DNA from: Perkinsela sp. CCAP 1560/9
Taxonomy: Eukaryota > Protista > Euglenozoa: Kinetoplastea
Direction: 5' to 3'
NCBI GenBank assembly: GCA_965644495.1
Contig: CBFFSA010000018.1
Location: forward strand, 62,001-126,000
DNA: 64,000 bases
The notes beneath the pieces are model-generated. The model searched no databases and had not been told where the DNA came from. It saw nothing but the letters and a program-made list of their open reading frames with translations. The translations under genes were made by a program, and so were the position numbers. Positions 1-49,933 of the stretch are shown piece after piece (position 1 is the stretch's first letter; each line of letters begins with the position of its first letter).

Positions 1-417
1 CAGCCGGAGGGGCGTACTGCAACCGACTCGGTCCCAGTCGGTAGAGGTGGTCCAGGCAACTCACCATCTCTTTACGCAGCCGGAGGGGCGCACTGCAACC
101 GACCGCTGCCTCGCGATAATGCAAGGCAGAGTCACGCCCAGTGGTCCTCAAGGGAGGCCACCATGGCGCATAGCTCCCGGGAAGAGACAGGCGCGAGAAG
201 AAGAAAGCCGGGGAGGGAAGAAAACTCACTCAAGGAGTGAGCCGGGGAGGGGTGAAAAGTCGGAAGTACGTCCCCTACTTCCACGACAAAGAGGGACAGT
301 TTCCGCTAGCCGTCAGCCGGAAACGGGCATTTAAAAGGAAAATGTATGCCCGTTTCCGGGAAAAGAAAGGAAGGGCTAGCAAAATGTACCAACAAGGTAC
401 AGAAACTGTATCTTTAT
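1..417 (-). mobile_element. SL-headed non-autonomous retroelement (SINE-like), subfamily B; 3' part runs off the window
   Basis: Minus strand begins ATAAAGATACAGTTTCTGTACCTTGTTG (417-390), then GTACATTTTGCTAG and a CCGGAAACGGGCAT...ATGCCCGTTTCCGG hairpin. Homologous to 17250-17820. Interrupts an LRR gene. Confidence 0.85.
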
Positions 418-2029: not shown

Positions 2030-3179
2030 GGCCCCAGTTGTGTGGTCGGACGAGACCAATATCTCGCGCTTTCAAACGGGGAGGTCTTTGTGCATGAGGG
2101 ATTCCTGGGGAGGAACTAGGTGGAAAAGGGGTGATCCCTACGGTGAAATATGGAGGGGAGGACATCATGATTTGGACGTATGTCCTGAAGCGGTGTGGGG
2201 TATGTGTATAAAGATACAGTTTCTGTACCTTGTTGTTCATCCTTTCTTTCCACGGCAACAGGCATAGTCTTACTGTAATTATATGCCCGTTGCCGGCCGG
2301 CACTAAGGTCAGGACTGTCCCTCTTTTCGTTGAAGCAGGGGACGCGCCTTTCACCCTTCACCCCTCCCCGACTCACTCTCCTGGAGTGAGTGTGCTTCCC
2401 TCTCTCGGCTTTTCTTTCTCGTGTCTACCTTTCCGAGGAGGTAATGCGTCACGGTGGCCTCCCTTAAGGACCACTAGACGTGTCCTTCGCTACGACTTCC
2501 GGCTCTCCGCACCTGGCGGTCACCCAGCTCTCCACACCTCGACTCTGTCGCAGCTCTCTGCACCCGGATTGCCCCCGAAACTGTAATATGGGGATTACGC
2601 ATCCGGCTCTCTGCACCTGCACATGACAACCGAGCTCTCTGCACCTGGGACGCCAGCTCTCTGCACCCACTTGCCACAGGCGAAGGCGAACCCTCGCGTG
2701 ATCCACCCGTCGTATGCGGGGTAAGGACATGTAGTGAGGCAAATCTCTGCATTATAAGTGCATGAAAAAAACAACTCTGGTTCAAGGGAACCTGAAGATT
2801 CTTGAGAATCTTTTCCCCTCTATCGAAAGTATCGGTCTAAATCCTCCAAGGCTGTCTCCCAACAAGATAACGACCCCAAGAGCAATCCGTTGTGCGCAAC
2901 GGTACCTTCGGGGTACCAGGATTGAAGTTGTGCGGTGGCCCCCGCAATCCCCTGACTTTAATCCCATTGAGACTCAAGCGGCGCCTTGCAGCACACTATG
3001 ATCCCCCAAGAGGTGTCCGAGAGTTGTGGGAGAGGGTCAAGATGGAAAGGGCGGACATACCACCCTCAGCATGTCGTGCTCAGGTGGACTCCTGTAGATT
3101 GCGAAGACGAAAGATAATCGATGGTAGGACTGGAACTTCGACGTCTTTTTATCGGAGGCTCTTGACAATCGTATCTTGA
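2030..3179 (+). mobile_element. Degenerate IS630/Tc1/mariner transposase, interrupted by SL-headed element
   Basis: DDE motifs in broken frames: WSDET, VWG, QQDNDPK (~2860), WPPQSPDFNPIE (~2935-2970). TIRs not identified. Confidence 0.8.
2208..2771 (+). mobile_element. SL-headed non-autonomous retroelement, subfamily A (spliced-form copy)
   Basis: SL relic 2208-2235 joined directly to TTCATCC; GCTCTCTGCACC internal repeats; ends ATCTC-TGCATTATAAGTGCA-TGA-A-tail. Confidence 0.9.
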
Positions 3180-3517
3180 AATCTTAATCTTGCAAACCAG
3201 AACATGTATAACATCACAAATACGAGATTTTCCAGAACTACTCTTTAAGATATGTATTCAAAATAATGTAAATGATACCATTTTCAGAAAACATAAATAT
3301 GGTACTTTAACAAAAAAATCTCCTTTTAAAGATTTTAAGACAAGAGAGAGTTTTAAGACAAGGGATCCCATGCAAACCTCTTTTCAATGAAGGTCTGGAG
3401 GAGAACTCTCGCTTTCGGGCATTGATCTCTTTCCTTCAACGTCGTGCACATTTGAGTCTCTCATTTCCGACTCACCTAGTCCTTCGGGATGCAGCTTCTC
3501 TGCAGTCGATCCCCCTG

Positions 3518-6500
3518 CTAAGCCGGATCACCCAAAATGTGATCCATCTCCACCACCCCTGCACCCGCCTCTGTACCATTCTCCCCGCCTCGCTCCTTCT
3601 CCCCGCCTCGCTCCTTCTCCCCACCATTTTCCGAAAAAATACCGCCTTGCGATACCTCTCGCAACGCCGAATCTTGCGACACATCCTGCGAAATCACTAC
3701 AACCTCTTTCCCCCCCTTTTCTTCTTCCTCCTCCCTCTCGAGTTCTCCTTCTTCCCGAGAAGACTTCCCCCCCTCGTTCTCCCCCTTTTCCACTTCCTCC
3801 CCACCCCCCTCATCTCCCCGAGAAGAACTCTTCTCCCCTTCCCCTTCCCCCTTCTCCTTTCCCTCTTCCCCACCCACCATCTCCCTCTCTTCCCCTACAG
3901 AACCCTTCTCCCCTCCCCCCTTCTCCTTTCCCTCTTCCCCACCCACCACCTCCCTCTCTTCCCCCACAGAACCCTTCTCCCCTTCCCCTTCCCCCTCCTC
4001 CTTTCCCCTCCCCTCTTCCCCACCCACCACCTCCCTTTCTTCCCCTACACAACCCTTCTCCCCTTCCCCTTCCCCCCCCTCCTCCTTTCCCCTCCCCTTT
4101 TCCCCACCCACCACCACCCCCTCTTCCCCACCCACCACCACCCCCTCTTCCCCACCCACCACCACCCCCTCTTCCCCACCCACCACCCCCTCTTCCCCAC
4201 CCACCACCTCCCTCTCTTCCCCTACACAACCCTTCTCCCCTTCCCCTTCCCCCCCCTCCTCCTTTCCCCTCCCCTCTTCCCCACCCACCACCTCCCCCTC
4301 TTCCCCACCCACCACCCCCTCTTCCCCACCCACCACCTCCCTCTCTTCCCCCACAGAACCCTTCTCCCCTTCCCCTTCCCCCTCCTCCTTTCCCCTCCCC
4401 TCTTCCCCACCCACCACCTCCCTTTCTTCCCCTACACAACCCTTCTCCCCTTCCCCTTCCCCCCCCTCCTCCTTTCCCCTCCCCTTTTCCCCACCCACCA
4501 CCACCCCCTCTTCCCCACCCACCACCACCCCCTCTTCCCCACCCACCACCACCCCCTCTTCCCCACCCACCACCACCCCCTCTTCCCCACCCACCACCAC
4601 CCCCTCTTCCCCACCCACCACCTCCCTCTCTTCCCCTACACAACCCTTCTCCCCTTCCCCTTCCCCCCCCTCCTCCTTTCCCCTCCCCTCTTCCCCACCC
4701 ACCACCTCCCCCTCTTCCCCACCCACCACCTCCCCCTTCCCCCCCCGTTCCCTCCCCCCCCTCCCCCTCCCCCCGCCCTTCCCCCAGTACCTCAGCAGGG
4801 CCCCCACCAGCCTCCCCCGCCGCTTCCCCGCCCCCCCGCACCCCACCCCCCTCCCCCGCGCGTACCCCTCCAGCTCCCCCACCCGGTACCACTGCAGCAG
4901 CTGCCACGCCGAGGTGTCGGGCCCGATCGGGGGCCGGTGCGCCACCAGGGTAGCGTGGGGGACGCGGGCGGGGGCGGTGAGCATGGCGTGGGCCGTGGCG
5001 GCGGGGACGGGGGGGTCGGCGGAGGTGACCCAGTGGACGGGGACGGAGCGGCTGGGGTCCGTGCAGAGGGCGATGAGCTCATCGGGGGTGGGGGGAGCGG
5101 CCATAGTACTTGTGGGGGTAGAGGCCGCAGTGGCGATGGTATTTGTGGGGGTAGTGGCGATAGGACTTGTGGGGGTAGAGGCCGCAGTGGCCATAGGGGG
5201 TGTAGGGGTAGCGGCCATGGGGGGTGTAGAGAGGGGACGGGGAGTCTCGGAGGGGATAAGGGTTGTTATGGTGGATAGGGAGACGAAGGGGCTGTTGTTG
5301 TTGTTGTTGTTAGGTTGCGTTGGTGAAGGGGTAGAGAATGTGGTGTTGGGTTGGAGTGAAGTTGTTTTTTGTTTTTTATGGCTTGGACGGGGAGGTTTGG
5401 GGTTGGTGTCTTTGAGGGTGCGAGAGTTGCGAGCTTTCGACGGGCGGGTAGGGGTTGTTTTGGTTTCTTGTCCCTTTTCTGGGGTTTCGGATGATGTGGG
5501 GGATTTTGTTATCCTGTTTTTTTTGGTCGAGGACAATCCAAAAGTGTTGTCTACTTTGGCAAGAAATGTTCTTTTGCGGCTGGAAGGGGGGTTGATGCTG
5601 GTAGGAGTTGCATCATTCGGGGAGGGATGGGTTTCGGGAAACAAACTTAACGGAGAAGAGCGCAATTGTGAGGTAGGAGAGGGTCGTGCCGGGGGTGTCT
5701 CAAAGGAGCTGTCTTTTCCAGTGGCCGAAAGATTGGCAGAAGAGGCTAATGAAAAAGACGTAGAAGGAGCGAGATTTGTAAGAAGTGCGGTTTTGGAGGG
5801 TGGGGGTGTTGATTCAGTTGGCAGTGCAGATTCTTGGGTAGCAGTTGATGCTTTTAAATTGGATGGATCTGAGTCCATGACGAGTGACTGTGCTAAAGGT
5901 TGTGCATTAAAGGCTAGATCGCTTGAAACCGGCGCCTCTACGGATAATTCCGAAGGCTCCGTTGGTTGTGCAAGCTCACTCGTGGGATGTGAAGTCTCAG
6001 GTCGGTGAGCAATAGAAACAAGATTACAAAACGTCCCGTCCAAAGATAAACGGGAAATAAAGCATGTCAACGTCCATCGTGCTGCAGGCTGAATGTGTTT
6101 CGTCGGTAACCCAATGCCTCTTGCCGTCGCTTCAAGTTGTCGCCTTGAGAATCCGGATAGCAAGGCATTGATTCCCAAAGCGATGTACCAATTTAGTAAA
6201 TCTCCTTCGAAAATTTCGTACATTGCGTGATGCTTGGCAATGGGCTCAATGTAGTTATAACATTCCTGATGTTTCGAAGGTTGACCCAAATAAGCGGCTT
6301 CATTAAATTCTGAAAGCGCCTTTTCGGCTTCTAAGGTCAGACTTCCATCCCGAAGGGTCTCTTCCCCGGGCTGCGCAGAACTGTCGCTTGACTGCTTCTC
6401 AGCAGCAAGAGTGTGCCCCACCATCTGACGAAGACGCGCTTGTGCATTTCGATAAATGAATTGCAAGGCCGCTTCTACACTCATGGAAGGATCCAAAGAG

Positions 6501-16743: not shown

Positions 16744-17181
16744 TTGTTCGTTCATGCACTTATAGTGCAGAGATTATGCTCACAAAGTCCGTGCCCGCAT
16801 ACGACGGGCGGATCAAGTGAGGGTTCGCCCTCGCCAGAGGTGTGCGGGTGCAGAGAGCTGGGGTCCCAGGTGCAGAGAGCTCGGTTGTCATGTGCAGGTG
16901 CAGAGAGCCGGATGCGTAATCCCCATATTACAGTTTCGGGGGCAATCCGGGTGCAGAGAGCTGCGACAGAGCCGAGGTGCAGAGAGCTGGGCGACCCCCA
17001 GGTGCGGAGAGCCGGGAGTCTCGTCGGCGGAGGACACGCCTAGTGGTCCTCAAGGGAGGCCACCGTGACGCATTACCTCCTCGGAAAGGTAGACACGAGA
17101 AAGAGAGCCGAGAGAGGGAAGCACACTCACTCCAGGGGAGTGAGTCGGGAAGGGATGAAGGGGTGGAAGCGCGTCCCCTGA
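16744..17181 (-). mobile_element. 5'-truncated non-autonomous retroelement, subfamily A
   Basis: Matches the 3' ~430 nt of 23959-24537; lacks the SL head; ends ATCTC-TGCACTATAAGTGCA-TGA plus a short extra tail. Confidence 0.9.
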
Positions 17182-17249
17182 ATCAACGAAAGTAAGGTTG
17201 CAGGAAGATGACAAAGATCAATACTACCCGTAAATTGATTGTACGACGT

Positions 17250-17820
17250 TTGATGCTCATGCGCTCGTTGGCGCAGAGATACAGCCCTTGATGCGACAGC
17301 CGATATCATCGGCACAATCCGTAATGACGGATGTCGCACCAAGGGGGTTTAGCACGGATTCTGTCGGTAGAGGGGGTCCAGGCAACTCGCCCTCTCTTTG
17401 CGCAGCCGGAGGGGTGCACTGCAACCGACTCGGTCCCAGTCGGTAGAGGTGGTCCAGGCAACTCACCACCTCTTTACGCAGCCGGAGGGGCGCACTGCAA
17501 CCGACCGCTGCCTCGCGATAAGACGAGGCAGAGCCACGCCCAGTGGTGCTCAAGGGAGGCCACCATGGCGCATGGCTCCCCGGGAAGGAAAAGGCGCGAA
17601 AGTAAGAAATACGGGGAGGGAAGAATACTCAATCAAAGAGTGAGCCGGGGAGGGGTGATGGGGTGGAAGCGCGTCCCCTACTTCGCCGAGAAAGAGGGAC
17701 AGTTTCGGCCTTAGTGCCGGCCGGCAACGGGCATATAAACAGTAAGACTATGCCCGTTGCCGGGGAAAGAAAAGATGAACTAAAGGAAAATGTACCAACA
17801 AGGTACAGAAACTGTATCTT
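17250..17820 (-). mobile_element. SL-headed non-autonomous retroelement, subfamily B
   Basis: SL relic 17820-17796, then GTACATTTTCCTTTAG, the 5' hairpin and two ~76-bp internal repeats; ends ATCTC-TGCGC-caacga-GCGCA-TGA. Confidence 0.9.
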
Positions 17821-23741: not shown

Positions 23742-23958
23742 ACAGGGTAGACTAATGTATTAAACGGGTTACAGGTTAACATACCGAGAATTCCCCCCCC
23801 CCCTACTTTTTCCCTACCAATCACATCATAATATATTGTTCCAGCGCGCCACAACTGTTGCTAACTGTAATTTCCGTTTCGGAAACATCGTAGATCATGT
23901 CCACATGTGCCCCTACAATTTGTAGGTTGCCCCGCAATTTCACATTGTTATGTATGTG

Positions 23959-24537
23959 TTTTATCATGCACTTATAGTGCAGAGATTTGCTCACCATGTC
24001 CTTATCCCGCATACGACGGGTGGACCATGTGAGGTTTCGTCCTCGCCGGAGGTGTGCGGGTGCGGAGAGCTGGCGTCCCAGGTGCAGAGAGCTCGGTTGT
24101 CATGTGCAGGTGCAGAGAGCCGGATGCGTAATCCCCATATTACAGTTTCGAGGGCAATCCGGGTGCAGAGAGCTGCGACAGAGCCGAGGTGCGGTGAGCT
24201 GGGCGACCGCCAGGTGCAGAGAGCCGAGTCTCGTCGGCGGAGGACACGTCTAGTGGTCCTCAAGGGAGGCCACCGTGACGCATGGCCCTCTCGGAGAGGA
24301 AAAAGACAAGTCGAAAAAAAGCCGAGAGGGGGAAGCACACTCACTCCAGGGGAGTGAGTCGGGGAGGGGTGAAGTGGTGAAAGCGCGTCCCCTGCTTCAG
24401 CGACAAGAGGGACAGTTCCGACCTTAGTGCCGGCCGGCAACGGGCATGAAAATACAGTAAGAGTATGCCCGTTGCCGGGGAAAGAAAGGATGAACTAAGG
24501 AAAAAGTACCAACAAGGTACAGAAACTGTATCTTTAT
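23959..24537 (-). mobile_element. SL-headed non-autonomous retroelement, subfamily A, full length
   Basis: SL relic 24537-24510, then GTACTTTTTCCTTAG; nearly identical to 48753-49324. Confidence 0.92.
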
Positions 24538-24603: not shown

Positions 24604-24630
<27 letters not shown>

Positions 24631-27600
24631 TATCATGTAGAAAATATTCTACAGAGATCAGACGGTGAATATGGGAGTTCCATATTACGCGCACAAAACG
24701 CGTTGAAATCACCTGACAGTCAGCGACTCACTCCCCAGAACTAACCTCCATCCACTGTTTGTTCTCGCGGTGCTGGAAAATTATGAAACTTCCCCGGAGA
24801 GCGCTACTCGTCATATTTCGGCGACACACTGCAACCGCTTCTTCATTTCCCATGTAGAGAGAGTTGAGCGTTCGGGCCGACATATGCAGTTTGCCTCTCG
24901 CTCCCACCTCGAAGACGAGTAGGAATGTGGTAGGATGGTCGAGTTTTCTAGAGTGATATAAACTCGTGTACTTTTCTATTTTGCGCTCGTGTGCGAACTC
25001 AAAATTCTCCTCCCAAGGGCAGGTAAGTTCTATAATGTATTCTTCTCCGTTAGATAGTTTCACCCATCCGTCAGGACGTAGCTCAGTATCAAGGTTCGTG
25101 AGCCACGCGGGGGTGGAGCGGAAGTGGGGGAGATCGAAGTGACATTGACTAGTGGAGGAGAATCGTTGTACGGAGTTCGCTAATGCCTGTAGTACCATGT
25201 TATGCCGTAGGGTATACCTCCCTTGTTCGAGTGACTTCCTACAACCAGATAGAATATGCCGCGTAGTTTGTGTCTCAGTGTCACATATGGGACATTTATC
25301 GCTCGCATGTCGATACGCCCCACCTACGAAGAGATGCCCTGGTTGGGAGCGGCGTCTCGGTAAGCACTGAGGATGTGAACCGCGAAAGCGATTCACTCTT
25401 GAGGTTGCATAGGGCGGCGGCGAAGACTCTCGCAAGGTCTGCTTCCGTTGCGATTCTGAACCATCGTCCTGCTACGGCAGTACGCCGTTGGACGGCTTCC
25501 GTGAGGTGTCGCTCGTATTCGCTTCCAAGGAGTCTTCGGACGTTACTATGGCTTGTACTGTGCATATCCGTCGGCGGGCGAATGTATCCTGCTCTCCTTT
25601 TGTTCGCTTCTCGCCTGATGCGCTCACGTAAAGCGTGCTGGACCTCGGGATCACGCGATTTATCCATTTGTTCCATTGTCCCCACAGTGGAAAGAAGCCA
25701 AAGTTTTGACAGACTCATGAGATTCCAGCCATGCTCTGAATAGAGCAGCTCACTAGTTGCTGATTTCGCTACGTTTAACCATTTCCGAATTTCGCGTGTG
25801 GCGCATCGCTGTAGACGAAGTACGTGATTGAAGGTAAGGCATGAGTTCACGACGAAGGAATACCGCAGACGAGAGATGATGCCGTTATTGTATATCCACA
25901 GGCGCGCGGGAAGGTCATGTGCGCTGGAAGATATATTACGCAACCAGGCTCGCAGACGGGTTCGTAGTTTTAGAAAGAGTGTCTTGCCTTGTTGAGCACC
26001 GGGTGCGAGCGTCATGCCTAAAAATGTGCTACCATTATCACATATGTGTGGGATAGGTGACGTGCCGATCATGATCTGTGGTCGGCGTGTCATATATCCA
26101 GAGTCTTGCGTCATCGCCATGTGTTGCAGCCGGCATTTTTTCACGTTTAGTTTCATCCCAATATCGCTTAGAACTTTGACGAGTGCGTTTGTAGCATTCT
26201 GCATTTCCTGGGGGGTATTTGTCAGAATAGTGAGGTCATCTGCGAAGGCTTTTAGAAAAATTTCTTTCGCATTCCACGTGATCCCGTATTCGGGGCAACT
26301 TGAACGGACAAAACGCAGAACTAGCTCCATCGCCAAGTCGAATAAAATAGGTGAAAGCGTATCTCCCTGCAATACACCACGACCTATCTCAATAGACTTC
26401 GTGAGTCCTTCTGCACATTTAATTTGTATAGACGCTCGTTCGTACAGCGCTTTGATGTAGTTAATGAGGATCGGTGAGACGCGCGCCCATTTTAAGGCCT
26501 GAAATAAAATTGTATGGGGTATAGATCCAAACGCGTTTTTGATATCAAACTAGGCAAGCACGTATTGCCTTTTGTGGCGCCGCTGGTGCTCGAGGAGCTC
26601 GCAAAGGACCTGGGTGTGCTCAACTGTCCCATTCATATGCGGCAAGAAGCCTTTTTGTATTGTTGTGTCCAGGGCATTGGAATCCAGGGAATGCTGAAGG
26701 ATACGGTGACTGAGGATTGAGTGGAAAAGCTTCCCAATGCAGCTAGTCAAGCTTATCGGCCGCCAGTTTTCCATACTTGAGGTGGGGCCCCCTTTGTGGA
26801 TAAGTCGAGTGACCGCAGTTTTCCAGGTTGGAGGGCATACACCAAATTTTAGGACATCATTAAACACCTGTGCCATGTGAGTAAAGACAGGGGCGCAGCG
26901 CTTTAGCAGCGCGTTCGATACAGTGTCCGAGCCTGGGGCAGCCCCAGAGCGTTTGGATGCGACGGCTGCTGCGATCATGTCTGAGTCAATATCTGACCAT
27001 TGCATCTCATCAAGGGGAATTGGTTTCGTAAATTCTGCGGGAGGAATCTTGTGTATCTCTTCTGGTCTAGACATTGAGCCCACAAAGAATCTTTCAACCT
27101 CCTGTACAGGAACTGTAGGGTAGGACGTCTCAGTTTCTGAGGTAGATGGGTCGACGCGATCTAAGCATTCGCCCGCGGCTGTCCAGGGATTTCGCTGGAA
27201 TCGCGTAAGAGCCCACCGTCGATCGATTTCTTTCCTCTGCATACTGGATTCTTCCATTTACTGCTTTAGTGCCTTTTCGGCTTCCTTTATTTTCCCTCGT
27301 TGCTTGTTTCTCGCAGGACCCTTCATGAACGTTAGCGCACGTTTAAGTTGTCGAACGTGTTGACTGAGTACTTTCACTGTGCGTTCAATGGCTAAGGGTC
27401 GTGAGTTTCTTCGGGCTCTGCCAGTTCTGGTCCGTATAAGAAAGCCGTGCGTCGGATCGTTTTCCCGTGCGGCCTCGAATGCAGTTACAGCGAGGATTGC
27501 TGAGAGTATTTCAGCTTGCGACAGGGCGTCCTCTTTGTTTCGCGCCAGGTGGATATACGAGTTGCAGCGTTCCTCGATCTTCGCAATAATACTCTCCCAC

Positions 27601-29477
27601 TGTTCCTCTGTGAAACGGACTAAAACGCGACCTCCATTCATTGTGCGGAATGTTTCGAGTAGGTTCTGCAGTTCAGGGAGAGGTCGGGTAGCCGGGACTT
27701 ACCGGACACGAGGGATGCGCTGCAATATCGTGTGTTCGCAGTTTCCTTCTGGTGGGGGAGGTAAAGGTAAGGGCAGAGGCGTGGGATCTGTTGCGGACTG
27801 CACAAGGGGTAAAGAAGGTGAGGAGCGGCGTACAGAAGGGGAATCATGTTGCGGGGCGTGGACAAGTGGTGCATTCCGCACAGGGCTCAGTATTGGACTC
27901 GAGCGATTCGAGGGGTTTGTGTGAACTGGGGGGTAGGTTGTTGCGCGTGGAGGGGGCGGTAGTGAAGCTTTTGCGGCGCGTTCCGCATCACCCATTGCAG
28001 GGCACAGTATATTTCTCGTGGTCCAGCATATGGCAGAGTACGCTACTTCAGCGACTTTGAGGAGAACTCCTTTCTGGCAGCATTGATGTTTACATGTTGC
28101 CTTGTCCTTACATTTATGAGCGCAGTTGCGACGAGGGGCTGTTGGGGCAGGGGTGTTGTTGTCATTGCTGGTGTGCAGGTCTGGAGAGGTACGGACGGGT
28201 TCGCGGAGTACAACCTCCGTGCTAGGTTGTATGACACCATTTTTGCAACATCGATGCTTGCACTGAGCTTTGTTGCTACATATGTGCCGACAGGGGCGAT
28301 AATTGACTTCATTGGTTGATGTTTGTGTGTGGTGTGTGGCGTCATCCATGCATCCTAGTGAGGGCGGATTTACGGTCGGGAGCTCCGGATCCCTGACCTC
28401 TTCGAAGTGTCCGATGTCTGGTGTGGTATGCTGATCGGTGTCTATGGATAAGTCTGCTGGTAGTGGACTACTTGCTCGAGCTATGGGTGGTTCCACGAGG
28501 GGTAGCACTGGTTGAGGACTACTTTGGGCATTGTAATGGGGACCCCCACTTTGCAACACTTGTGCAGACAATTTCTTTTGTCGCGGCATGTGTGTTTGCA
28601 CGGTCTTCTGTGAGAAGTAAGTGAGGGTTCCATAGGGGCAACGTCCTCGGGAGAGGGAAGAGACACGTTAGGCGGAAGAGATCCTTCGTGTCGTACTTTG
28701 CAACATGCGTGGAGACACGATGTTTTGTCCCGGCATTTATAAGCGCATGAGGCACGTGGTTCGAGAGCGTGTTTTGAGGCATATGATGGCGGTGACACCT
28801 TGTAAGAGTCATCTCGGATCCTATAGGGTGCGTCGTAGGTGATCTCTGGGTGACCCCGTAGTAGTTCAATGGGTTGTGTTTTTCGAGTTACGTGTGTGAT
28901 TTGGAATTTTCGTAATCCTGGGATGTCACTACCACATAATTTCTTCGTGACCGCTTTGCCGAGCGCGTTCGAAGAGGAGTACACTGCGTTAAGCTGCATG
29001 AACGAATCCCTGTAGGCGGAACTCCAGCTGGCGTGACAAAACGTGCGACTTGGGTTTCCCGTTTCTTGGTATTTTAGGTGTTCACATGCGTTGTTTTCAA
29101 TGACATCTTGAATTGTACACGATTTGATTATCAGACCATCACTTCTTTTGCTTTCCGACTTCAAGGTTTTGCCGATCGAGGCTTCAGCCGTGTGGACACT
29201 CGAGAAGAACTCTCGTTCTGTGAGGGCAATGGCTGCGGCATGCGTGTCTGGGAAATATGACCATGTGACGCTGTCCGAGGGGCGGATTTTGACGGGCATC
29301 GCTCGACTTTGGATGAAGTGAAAGCTCTGGGGATGTCGCTGCGCGCTGACAGGTCCTCGAGGGAGGCCGTCGTGCGCGATGGGAGCCGGTGAGGTGACAT
29401 TGGAGGCCATGCTCCGGAAGATAAAGTTAGTACAAAATTGAAAATAATTCAACAAGGTACAGAAACTGTATCTTTAT
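24604..29477 (-). mobile_element. RLE-type (R2 group) non-LTR retrotransposon, SL-headed, degenerate single ORF
   Basis: SL relic 29477-29450; ATG at 29410; four Cys motifs; RT motifs (APGSD, WRPISL, QKGF, DIKNAFGSIPH, QGDTLSP, FADD); CCHC knuckle CPICD...HILSGC; endonuclease RPDG...IELTCPWEE...KIEKY; (TA)n tail. Has two in-frame stops and about three frameshifts. Confidence 0.95.
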
Positions 29478-48225: not shown

Positions 48226-48752
48226 ATTAAAGATTAATTTTACTTGAAGATAGCATTTGCGGATAAGATTCCCAGGAGTGCCTATTTTCGATCAAAATAA
48301 AAGTAGATTTCGGAAGACAAAGGCGACTGTCTACTTTTCCTTTTCGTATTCTTAGCTCACATACTTTCACCTCTCCTAGCGTTATCCGATTCTAGTAAAA
48401 AGCAACGCTAGGATAGGGAGTATAGTTCGCTAGACATTTCCTCAAAATATGTTTTGTCACATGAAATATCCAGCATTGTTGCCATCAAGAGAAAATATGG
48501 GAAAACAATACACCAGTCCAACTTAACATGCCCCCCTCAAAGAGAAAGCTAGATGATCAAAGGATATTTTACAGTTGTATCCATTACATTTGATTGCTTT
48601 ACAGTTACGTTCTGCAATTACAAACCAATTCGTAGCTTCAAGTCGACGGCACCAACCAATTCGTTTTGGTGAAAAAAACGGAGTTATTATTACGCAGTTT
48701 TAAATATTATCTTAGTCTCTTCAATTTCTACAACTTTTTTGCCGCTACTAGG

Positions 48753-49337
48753 TTTTATCATGCACTTATAGTGCAGAGATTTGCTCACCATGTCCTTATC
48801 CCGCATACGACGGGTGGATCATGTGAGGTTTCGTCCTCGCCGGAGGTGTGCGGGTGCGGAGAGCTGGCGTCCCAGGTGCAGAGAGCTCGGTTGTCATGTG
48901 CAGGTGCAGAGAGCCGGATGCGTAATCCCCATATTACAGTTTCGGGGGCAATCCGGGTGCAGAGAGCTGCGACAGAGCCGAGGTGCGGAGAGCTGGGCGA
49001 CCGCCAGGTGCAGAGAGCCGAGTCTCGTCGGCGGAGGACACGTCTAGTGGTCCTCAAGGGAGGCCACCGTGACGCATGACCCTCTCGGAGAGGAAAAAGA
49101 CAAGTCGAAAAAAAGCCGAGAGGGGGAAGCACACTCACTCCAGGGGAGTGAGTCGGGGAGGGGTGAAGTGGTGAAAGCGCGTCCCCTGCTTCAGCGACAA
49201 GAGGGACAGTTCCGACCTTAGTGCCGGCCGGCAACGGGCATGAAAATACAGTAAGAGTATGCCCGTTGCCGGGGAAAGAAAGGATGAACTAAGGAAAAAG
49301 TACCAACAAGGTACAGAAACTGTACTGTACAGAAACT
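48753..49337 (-). mobile_element. SL-headed non-autonomous retroelement, subfamily A, with doubled SL fragment
   Basis: Starts AGTTTCTGTAC-AG-TACAGTTTCTGTACCTTGTTG; body nearly identical to 23959-24537. Confidence 0.92.
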
Positions 49338-49933
49338 TAATTTACGCAAATGCTCTGGTAAAAATTCTTGGTATATTTCACCGCATAGATCTTTGTTGTG
49401 CGACAACCGTAGTGATCGTAAAAGTGGAGAAAGAGAATCAAAAGCTACATTTCCCGAGAATAAGTTGTGATCCAGGGCAATATATTTCATTGTCTTTGGT
49501 AGTTTGGTCAAACACACTTGACCCGATAAATGATTATTGCTGAGGTATAGCCCGAAAAGATTATCTGGAAGCTTTGTCAGACAAACTTCTCCGGTAAATT
49601 TATTGTTGTTCAGAGCTAGCCATTGTAAATTAACCGGAAGAGACGTAAGATTCAAGGTCCCGCTAAACCTGTTGAAGTTTACGATAAAAGTTAAAAGATT
49701 AAGCGGGAGAATATCTAGAGGCACTTCACCTGAAAGAGAGTTTTGAAAAAAAAAAAGATTTAAGAGTCCGAGAAAGATGACCAAAACGCAGTGAGCCTGA
49801 CGCTTGTATACCCTCCCATTGTATTTTTTGGATGTCCCCACATTTGTTACATTCCACACCCTTCCACTGGCACGCCGAGAAGTCCGTACTCCGTGAGCGG
49901 TGCTTTGTTTCTACATCGGCAATGAGTAACATA

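Follow-up and report, generated by a model that had tools for sequence, protein, structure and literature searches.

How does a mobile element come to lose exactly the piece of DNA that separates its spliced-leader head from its body? The question is raised by the element copy that begins at position 2208 of the window, the whole stretch of 64,000 nt of Perkinsela sp. CCAP 1560/9 DNA that was analyzed here. In kinetoplastids, trans-splicing makes every mRNA 5′ end. How the mobile elements of these organisms gain usable 5′ ends without promoters is, to our knowledge, poorly understood, and we know of hardly any use of spliced-leader (SL) relics in DNA for tracing retroposition outside the dinoflagellates. 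The original prediction for this locus, made from the letters alone, was that the 2208 copy has precisely lost a GT...AG segment that other copies retain behind the SL, and that the element carries its own trans-splice acceptor, so that a copy embedded in a polycistronic transcript can be cut out and re-capped with a fresh SL.

The Element and Its Copies in the Window

Positions 2208–2235 (+) read ATAAAGATACAGTTTCTGTACCTTGTTG, which corresponds to the 3′-terminal 28 nt of the host SL, and TTCATCC follows directly at 2236–2242. The junction is therefore exact and the GT...AG segment is absent, as had been predicted. The four other copies also read as described, with the SL followed by GTAC, pyrimidines and AG and then by the body. 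On the minus strand, SL/GTACTTTTTCCTTAG/TTCATCC is found at 24537 and 49324, SL/GTACATTTTCCTTTAG/TTCATCT at 17820 and SL/GTACATTTTGCTAG/CCCTTCC at 417 (slashes mark the junctions). A 12-nt core of the SL occurs 8 times in the window, compared with 0.16 occurrences expected from shuffled sequences.

Comparison of the window with itself gave a unit of about 540–575 bp that consists, in this order, of the SL relic, a leader of 14–17 nt in most copies, a hairpin and a 3′ module (Table 1). The leader begins with GTAC, continues in a pyrimidine run and ends in AG, and the strong hairpin sits 16 nt past it. The arms of the hairpin are GGAAAC/GTTTCC in subfamily A and GGCAAC/GTTGCC in the others, both arms having changed. 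No Rfam family was matched at the gathering cut-offs anywhere in the window, and the same search found no polymerase III-derived head (tRNA, 7SL or 5S) on the element. The element is a non-coding, LINE-dependent, SINE-like retroposon. Because it and the LINE at 29477–24612 begin with the same 28-nt relic and end in a module of the same design (TCTCTG, hairpin, ATGA and A-rich tail), the short element is a non-autonomous partner of this LINE. The best matches of the LINE reverse-transcriptase pieces (RVT_1) among solved structures are R2 proteins.

The sequences upstream of the copies comprise leucine-rich-repeat (LRR) genes, the transposase pseudogene at 2208 and other, unique sequence. The frame of the pseudogene runs on through the 2208 insert, and no target duplication was seen at this insertion. 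Elsewhere in the window, a long open frame at 3422–5278 (+) is made up of proline/leucine-rich repeats of 24–81 nt, in a GC-rich region with a strongly negative GC skew; these repeats keep a 300-nt register, with 19 copies.

Table 1. Coordinates of the element copies and associated features in the window.
Feature	Position	Strand	Remark
SL relic heading the deleted-form copy	2208–2235	+	matches the SL RNA gene exon at locus L015 exactly
Deleted-form SINE-like body, TTCATCC straight after the SL, no GT...AG leader	2236–2775	+	97% identity to L007 and L004, both deleted too
5′ hairpin of the element, arms CCACGGCAACAGGCAT / ATGCCCGTTGCCGG	2250–2297	+	read from the sequence
3′ module: TCTCTG, hairpin, ATGA, short A-rich tail	2744–2775	+	LINE 3′ end at 24612–24660 laid out alike
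Retained form, subfamily A: SL relic 417–390, leader GTACATTTTGCTAG 389–376	376–417	-	body leaves the window at its start
Retained form, 25-nt SL head, leader GTACATTTTCCTTTAG 17795–17780, body internally duplicated	16752–17820	-	
Retained form, subfamily C: SL relic 24537–24510, leader GTACTTTTTCCTTAG 24509–24495	23958–24537	-	
Retained form, subfamily C, additional partial SL fragment 49338–49327 before the head; leader 49303–49289	48752–49338	-	
Broken partner LINE, same 28-nt SL head (29477–29450), R2-like reverse-transcriptase pieces	24612–29477	-	same type of 3′ hairpin and tail
Tc1/mariner-like transposase pseudogene split by the 2208 copy	2040–3001	+	translation ...RWPPQSPDFNPIE; DDE_3 E = 2.8e-4, under Pfam's cut-off

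Exact Loss of the Leader across the Genome

SL junctions were counted in the 21-Mb genome, and 80 retained copies together with every deleted copy were retrieved for comparison. The 22-nt core of the SL occurs 527 times. The junction SL/GTAC, in which the leader is retained, is present in 120 copies; SL/TTCWTC, in which it is lost, is present in 15 copies, 12 of them exact; and SL/CCCTTCC, the corresponding leaderless junction of subfamily A, is present in 3. Precise loss of the leader is thus found in 18 copies compared with about 120 that retain it. Had the deletion noticed in a single copy been unique in the genome, this would have counted against the original prediction; it is shared by 17 further copies.

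The leaders differ among the subfamilies, with lengths of 14, 15, 16 and 17 nt and the sequences GTACATTTTGCTAG (A), GTACATTTTCCCTTTAG (B), GTACATTTTCCTTTAG (B′) and GTACTTTTTCCTTAG (C), among others. They have GT and AG ends in every subfamily, and in all subfamilies 9–12 pyrimidines precede the first AG after the SL. Whatever the length of the leader, every loss spans the sequence from the first base past the SL through this first AG. Exact loss is seen on leaders of 14, 15 and 17 nt and in at least four subfamilies, and in the deleted copies the SL is followed by the very base that comes after the AG in their 99%-identical retained relatives.

Other junctions are rare. SL/CCTTAG, SL/AGTTAATC and SL/ATTTTCC occur once each, and the remainder are slips in the TTGTTGG run. 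Among the junction slips, one G is lost in at least 10 copies and GTTG in 3, and there are single deletions of 4, 9 and 13 nt. The 18 exact AG-bounded losses compare with 6 for all other deletions of at least 4 nt, half of which are GTTG slips in the TTGTTGG run. The genome search found no SL joined deeper within the element body and no copy with AG/GTAC, the unspliced precursor. All copies of the leader are preceded by an SL or a slipped SL, except for one duplicated locus that has neither SL nor AG. At locus L098 (G000:C77:20570-21485), an SL head and the leader GTACATTTTCGCTAG are present, and immediately behind the AG the sequence ceases to be that of the element, so that the break coincides with the acceptor boundary.

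Recurrence of the Loss

Did the leader disappear once, in a subfamily that then multiplied, or many times? A first tree was built from 80 bodies that were stripped of SL and leader, 11 of them from deleted copies. In this tree, the deleted state requires 9 changes among the 11 rows, at least 5 of which are forced by well-supported branches, and the deleted rows form a single origin in no bootstrap tree. In a second tree, to which the deleted copies of subfamily A were added, there are 12 changes among 14 deleted rows, and the AU test rejects a single clade with p = 2e-13. Furthermore, for 10 of the 14 deleted copies compared, the nearest relative is a retained copy, at 97.6–99.8% identity (at least 99.0% in eight cases), and no other deleted copy is as near; L014 stands at about the same distance from its retained and deleted relatives. 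The nearest deleted and retained pairs are L011 and L061 (99.8%), L012 and L046 (99.6%), L099 and L086 (99.6%) and L001 and L034 (99.4%). The flanks differ among the loci, except for the duplicated pair L008/L010 and an upstream repeat common to L003 and L004. From the changes in the trees, the retained nearest neighbors and the differing flanks, we therefore conclude that exact removal of the leader evidently arose repeatedly, in independent subfamilies.

A deleted form that represents one old subfamily, in which a single deletion was amplified, is thus refuted as a general explanation by the AU test and the tree, and we regard it as extremely improbable. It is valid only for the lineage around 2208. 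The 2208 copy clusters with L004 and L007, both of which are deleted (support 100/99, 97% identity), and L008 and L010 look like additional members of this deleted-only lineage; the nearest retained copy, on the other hand, is only 89% identical to it. Because all members of its older lineage are deleted, the 2208 copy probably inherited its deletion from a deleted master. This master has no AG between head and hairpin, yet it multiplied. Therefore, the leader and its acceptor are not required for mobility.

Could the loss have occurred at the level of DNA or cDNA, by replication slippage, by a jump of the reverse transcriptase over the leader or by gene conversion from a deleted copy? Small slips do happen at the junction, and template jumping is a known property of R2-type enzymes. 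However, the sole microhomology, CCTT in the end of the SL and in the end of the leader, predicts ...TGTACCTTAGTTCATC and not the observed junction, and the exact AG-bounded form exceeds all other deletions of at least 4 nt threefold and recurs on leaders of three lengths. Several deleted copies sit on terminal branches of 0–0.004, that is, they are nearly free of substitutions and are already deleted, which makes them too young for a specific deletion in place to have arisen repeatedly. As for gene conversion, the bases diagnostic of the subfamilies begin 7 nt past the junction (TTCATCT, TTCATCC and CCCTTCC), and the conversion tracts would need to end within these 7 nt. Taken together, we consider a loss at the DNA or cDNA level unlikely.

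Probable Trans-Splicing at an Internal Acceptor

The explanation that we favor, and regard as probable, is that a fresh SL was trans-spliced at the first AG after the leader pyrimidines and that the resulting RNA was then retroposed. The starting point would be a non-coding retroposon that is copied by an R2-like LINE and whose DNA opens with the 28-nt 3′ part of the host SL. Such a copy would be transcribed, normally within a long polycistronic RNA, and the trans-splicing machinery would take the pyrimidine run and the first AG as an ordinary acceptor, so that a new SL would be attached exactly after that AG. Reverse transcription and insertion of this RNA by the LINE enzyme would yield a new copy in which the SL adjoins the body without a leader. 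One such re-spliced product would have founded the small lineage that includes the 2208 copy. We infer both the SL trans-splicing step and the later trimming of the new head to 28 nt.

Several features are consistent with this proposal. In kinetoplastids, the AG chosen for trans-splicing is the first one past a pyrimidine tract, and the layout found here is an ordinary one: either the GTAC or the relic offers an upstream branch A, and the pyrimidines with their first AG come next. In L033, the CAG inside the relic is the point at which a partial SL is attached, with the remainder of the relic and then the leader behind it; this looks like an independent case of a fresh SL added to element RNA. 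The copy of the window at 49304–49338 (-) and L033 have identical bodies, each with a different odd head that bears an extra partial SL; in the window copy, GTTTCTGTAC is followed by AG and then by the relic from TACAG. Among the points against the trans-splicing reading, the pyrimidine tract is short, at 9–12 nt, and most copies keep the leader, from which it follows either that the acceptor is seldom used or that its products rarely insert. Five sequencing runs were available as contigs, four of which seem to be DNA from this organism, while one, a small run from 2015, is guessed to be RNA. The guessed-RNA run contains a single SL-headed contig, of 884 nt, with unrelated sequence behind the leader, and neither SINE nor LINE.

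The original prediction thus holds in part. An acceptor belonging to the element itself is supported by the exact, AG-ended loss in at least four subfamilies, whereas the 2208 copy that suggested it probably acquired its deletion by descent. Re-capping was also proposed as a promoter-independent mode of 5′-end formation, and it is not the main route, since copies with the leader outnumber those without it by about 120 to 18 and an all-deleted lineage has multiplied. On our best reading, the re-splicing route explains about 13% of the copies.

Could the relic itself, with the GT that follows it, serve as a 5′ splice site instead? The 14–17-nt piece would then be removed as a cis micro-intron or between two transcripts, and the head would be inherited. 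Such a donor would agree with the GT...AG boundaries in every subfamily, and the 28-nt head mode of the deleted copies would need no trimming. In addition, GTAC(A) pairs with the TGTAC of the spliced leader, as GGUAU does in stem-loop I of the true SL RNA, so that SL/GTAC(A) makes the same apical hairpin as the genuine 5′ splice site. However, the donor of the true SL RNA has stems and a U-rich site behind it, none of which accompany the relic, and the subfamily C leader, GTACTTTTTCCTTAG, has no branch-point A between GTA and AG. Moreover, the shortest spliceosomal introns known to us, those of a ciliate, measure about 15 nt, and a piece of 14–17 nt is at or under that size; kinetoplastids also have very few cis introns. 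On these mechanistic grounds, we rank the use of the relic as a donor below trans-splicing and hold it to be quite unlikely. The original prediction had already placed a cis micro-intron second, and the length of the piece and the missing branch A in subfamily C agree with that order. Its further suggestion, that the retained SL/GT might act as a donor attached to the upstream LRR half, found no support, and the GTAC pairs within the element, with the spliced leader's own TGTAC.

The Host Spliced Leader and the 28-nt Head

The genuine SL RNA genes form a tandem pair, 297 bp apart, that adjoins a 5S rRNA gene near 661 kb of contig 1 (L015, G000:C1:660800-662100). Each gene consists of AACTTTAACG and the same 28 nt that head the element, followed by GTATGAGAAGC, and the SL RNA of these units folds into three stems (z = -6.15). 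At this locus, Rfam gives a 5S rRNA match only, with 38.6 bits, clipped by the end of the locus. The assembly holds only a handful of SL/GTAT sites, so that the SL array is probably either a small one or collapsed. The intron of the true SL RNA begins with GTATGAG (GTATGAGAAGC) and not with GTAC and pyrimidines. A derivation of the element's leader from this intron was considered and rejected, as the similarity stops after GTA (it ends at window position 24507).

Two loci, L016 (G000:C1:409600-410600) and L017 (G000:C2:801100-802100), resemble retro-copies of unspliced SL RNA. Their heads begin at base 4 of the spliced leader (TTTAACG), the intron start GTATGAGAAGCT is present, and both continue into a common GCGGAGGTGGCGGAG repeat; L017 has an A-rich tail after the last stem.

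Why does the head of the element measure 28 nt when the full spliced leader measures 38? The mode of the head length is 28–29 nt in retained and deleted copies alike, with tails toward shorter lengths. Heads of at least 31 nt were found in 4 retained copies and in no deleted copy, a comparison of low power with only 18 deleted copies. In the genome as a whole, 364 of the 527 SL relics retain at least 32 nt; many SL relics are clustered, for example in tandem units of 5.09 kb at C1:2477636-2492945. Because the other relics mostly keep at least 32 nt and the SL RNA retro-copies begin at base 4, the 28-nt head is peculiar to this SINE and its LINE and does not reflect a general limit of reverse transcription. 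If the deleted copies came from RNA with a fresh 38-nt spliced leader, then an additional step of head trimming would therefore be needed each time.

The head starts at the 11/12 boundary of the spliced leader, which is also where CZAR and SLACS enter the mini-exon, between its nucleotides 11 and 12 (PMC5814959). This coincidence suggests that the endonuclease of the element may have a role. In a stronger version of this idea, the repeatedly arising deleted copies would serve as a natural experiment: each would have begun as RNA with a fresh 38-nt spliced leader and ended with the usual 28 nt. The 28-nt head would then be re-made at every insertion, with an R2-like endonuclease that cuts the SL duplex at 11/12 as the candidate; we think this improbable. 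If it were true, the re-making of the head would tie an LRR-targeting family to SL-gene-specific ancestors and would represent a new way to define the 5′ end of a retroelement.

The 5′ junctions show further irregularities. In L076, L088, L068 and L070, exact tandem duplications of 8–11 nt of flank lie right before the head (for example, CTTTCATAATT twice and ATGGACTGTAC twice), and stray, incomplete pieces of the SL lie a few bases ahead of the head in L085, L072, L028 and L098. These duplications and fragments suggest that the inserting enzyme forms the 5′ junction untidily. Within the relic, ATACAG is changed to ATGCAG four times (L025, L026, L067 and L090) and also in the SL RNA retro-copy L016, and AAAGAT is changed to AAAAAT three times (L019, L040 and L075). 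The recurring changes fall in copies of different subfamilies and could reflect either variant SL genes that feed the heads or mutation hot spots. Lastly, L003, L004, L042 and L048, which belong to different subfamilies, have the upstream sequence ...CCAGGGATTAGCAACACC in common, joined to a 19-nt head, which indicates a second repeated target site beside the LRR genes.

Significance and Comparison with Known Systems

The recurrent, AG-bounded loss of the leader would amount to fossil evidence that the RNA of an element can be excised from host transcripts, capped with the SL and still inserted. The deleted copies also provide a handle on the question of whether the 28-nt head is inherited or re-made at each insertion. 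A search of the accessible papers found no report of the re-splicing of SL relics in kinetoplastid elements. Four known systems share parts of the pattern.

The short length, the lack of coding capacity, the many young copies and the 3′ hairpin and tail designed like those of the LINE are all shared with LINE-dependent SINEs. The head, on the other hand, is a fragment of the SL that is common to SINE and LINE, and there is no target duplication at 2208. With alternative 3′ acceptor choice in kinetoplastid trans-splicing, the likeness consists of the pyrimidine tract, the first AG downstream and the SL joined exactly after it. The difference is that the event is known here from fossil copies in DNA and not from transcripts, and that the upstream junction, SL/GTAC, is without an AG in any genomic copy found.

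The LINEs of the CRE clade (SLACS, CZAR and CRE1/2) are also linked to the SL, and the insertion of CZAR and SLACS at 11/12 leaves 28 nt downstream, which is where the present heads start. A further point in common is the reverse transcriptase of the partner LINE, which is nearest to R2-type proteins among solved structures. However, the copies described here lie outside SL RNA genes, in LRR genes or, in the case of 2208, within a transposase pseudogene, and their SL piece stands at the 5′ end of the element and not in the flank 3′ of it.

Together with the CRE clade, the closest known case is that of the dinoflagellates, whose retrogenes Slamovits and Keeling reportedly described in 2008 as carrying relict spliced leaders. 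In these genomes, relict SLs mark copies made from trans-spliced RNA, and repeated rounds leave extra pieces of SL (PMC6050394; PMC5585692). In both cases, a retroposed unit opens with SL sequence encoded in DNA, and L033 has the extra-SL pattern of the dinoflagellate genes. In the dinoflagellates, however, the carriers are protein-coding genes, whereas here the SL is carried by a LINE and by the non-coding element that depends on it, in a genome of kinetoplastid type and with a head cut to 28 nt. Furthermore, the dinoflagellate AG lies inside the relic and the leaders stack, whereas here a dedicated pyrimidine-AG lies behind the relic, and splicing at this site would remove sequence. The element of the window therefore differs from both the dinoflagellate and the CRE cases in its LINE/SINE carrier, its truncated 28-nt head and its dedicated acceptor behind the relic.
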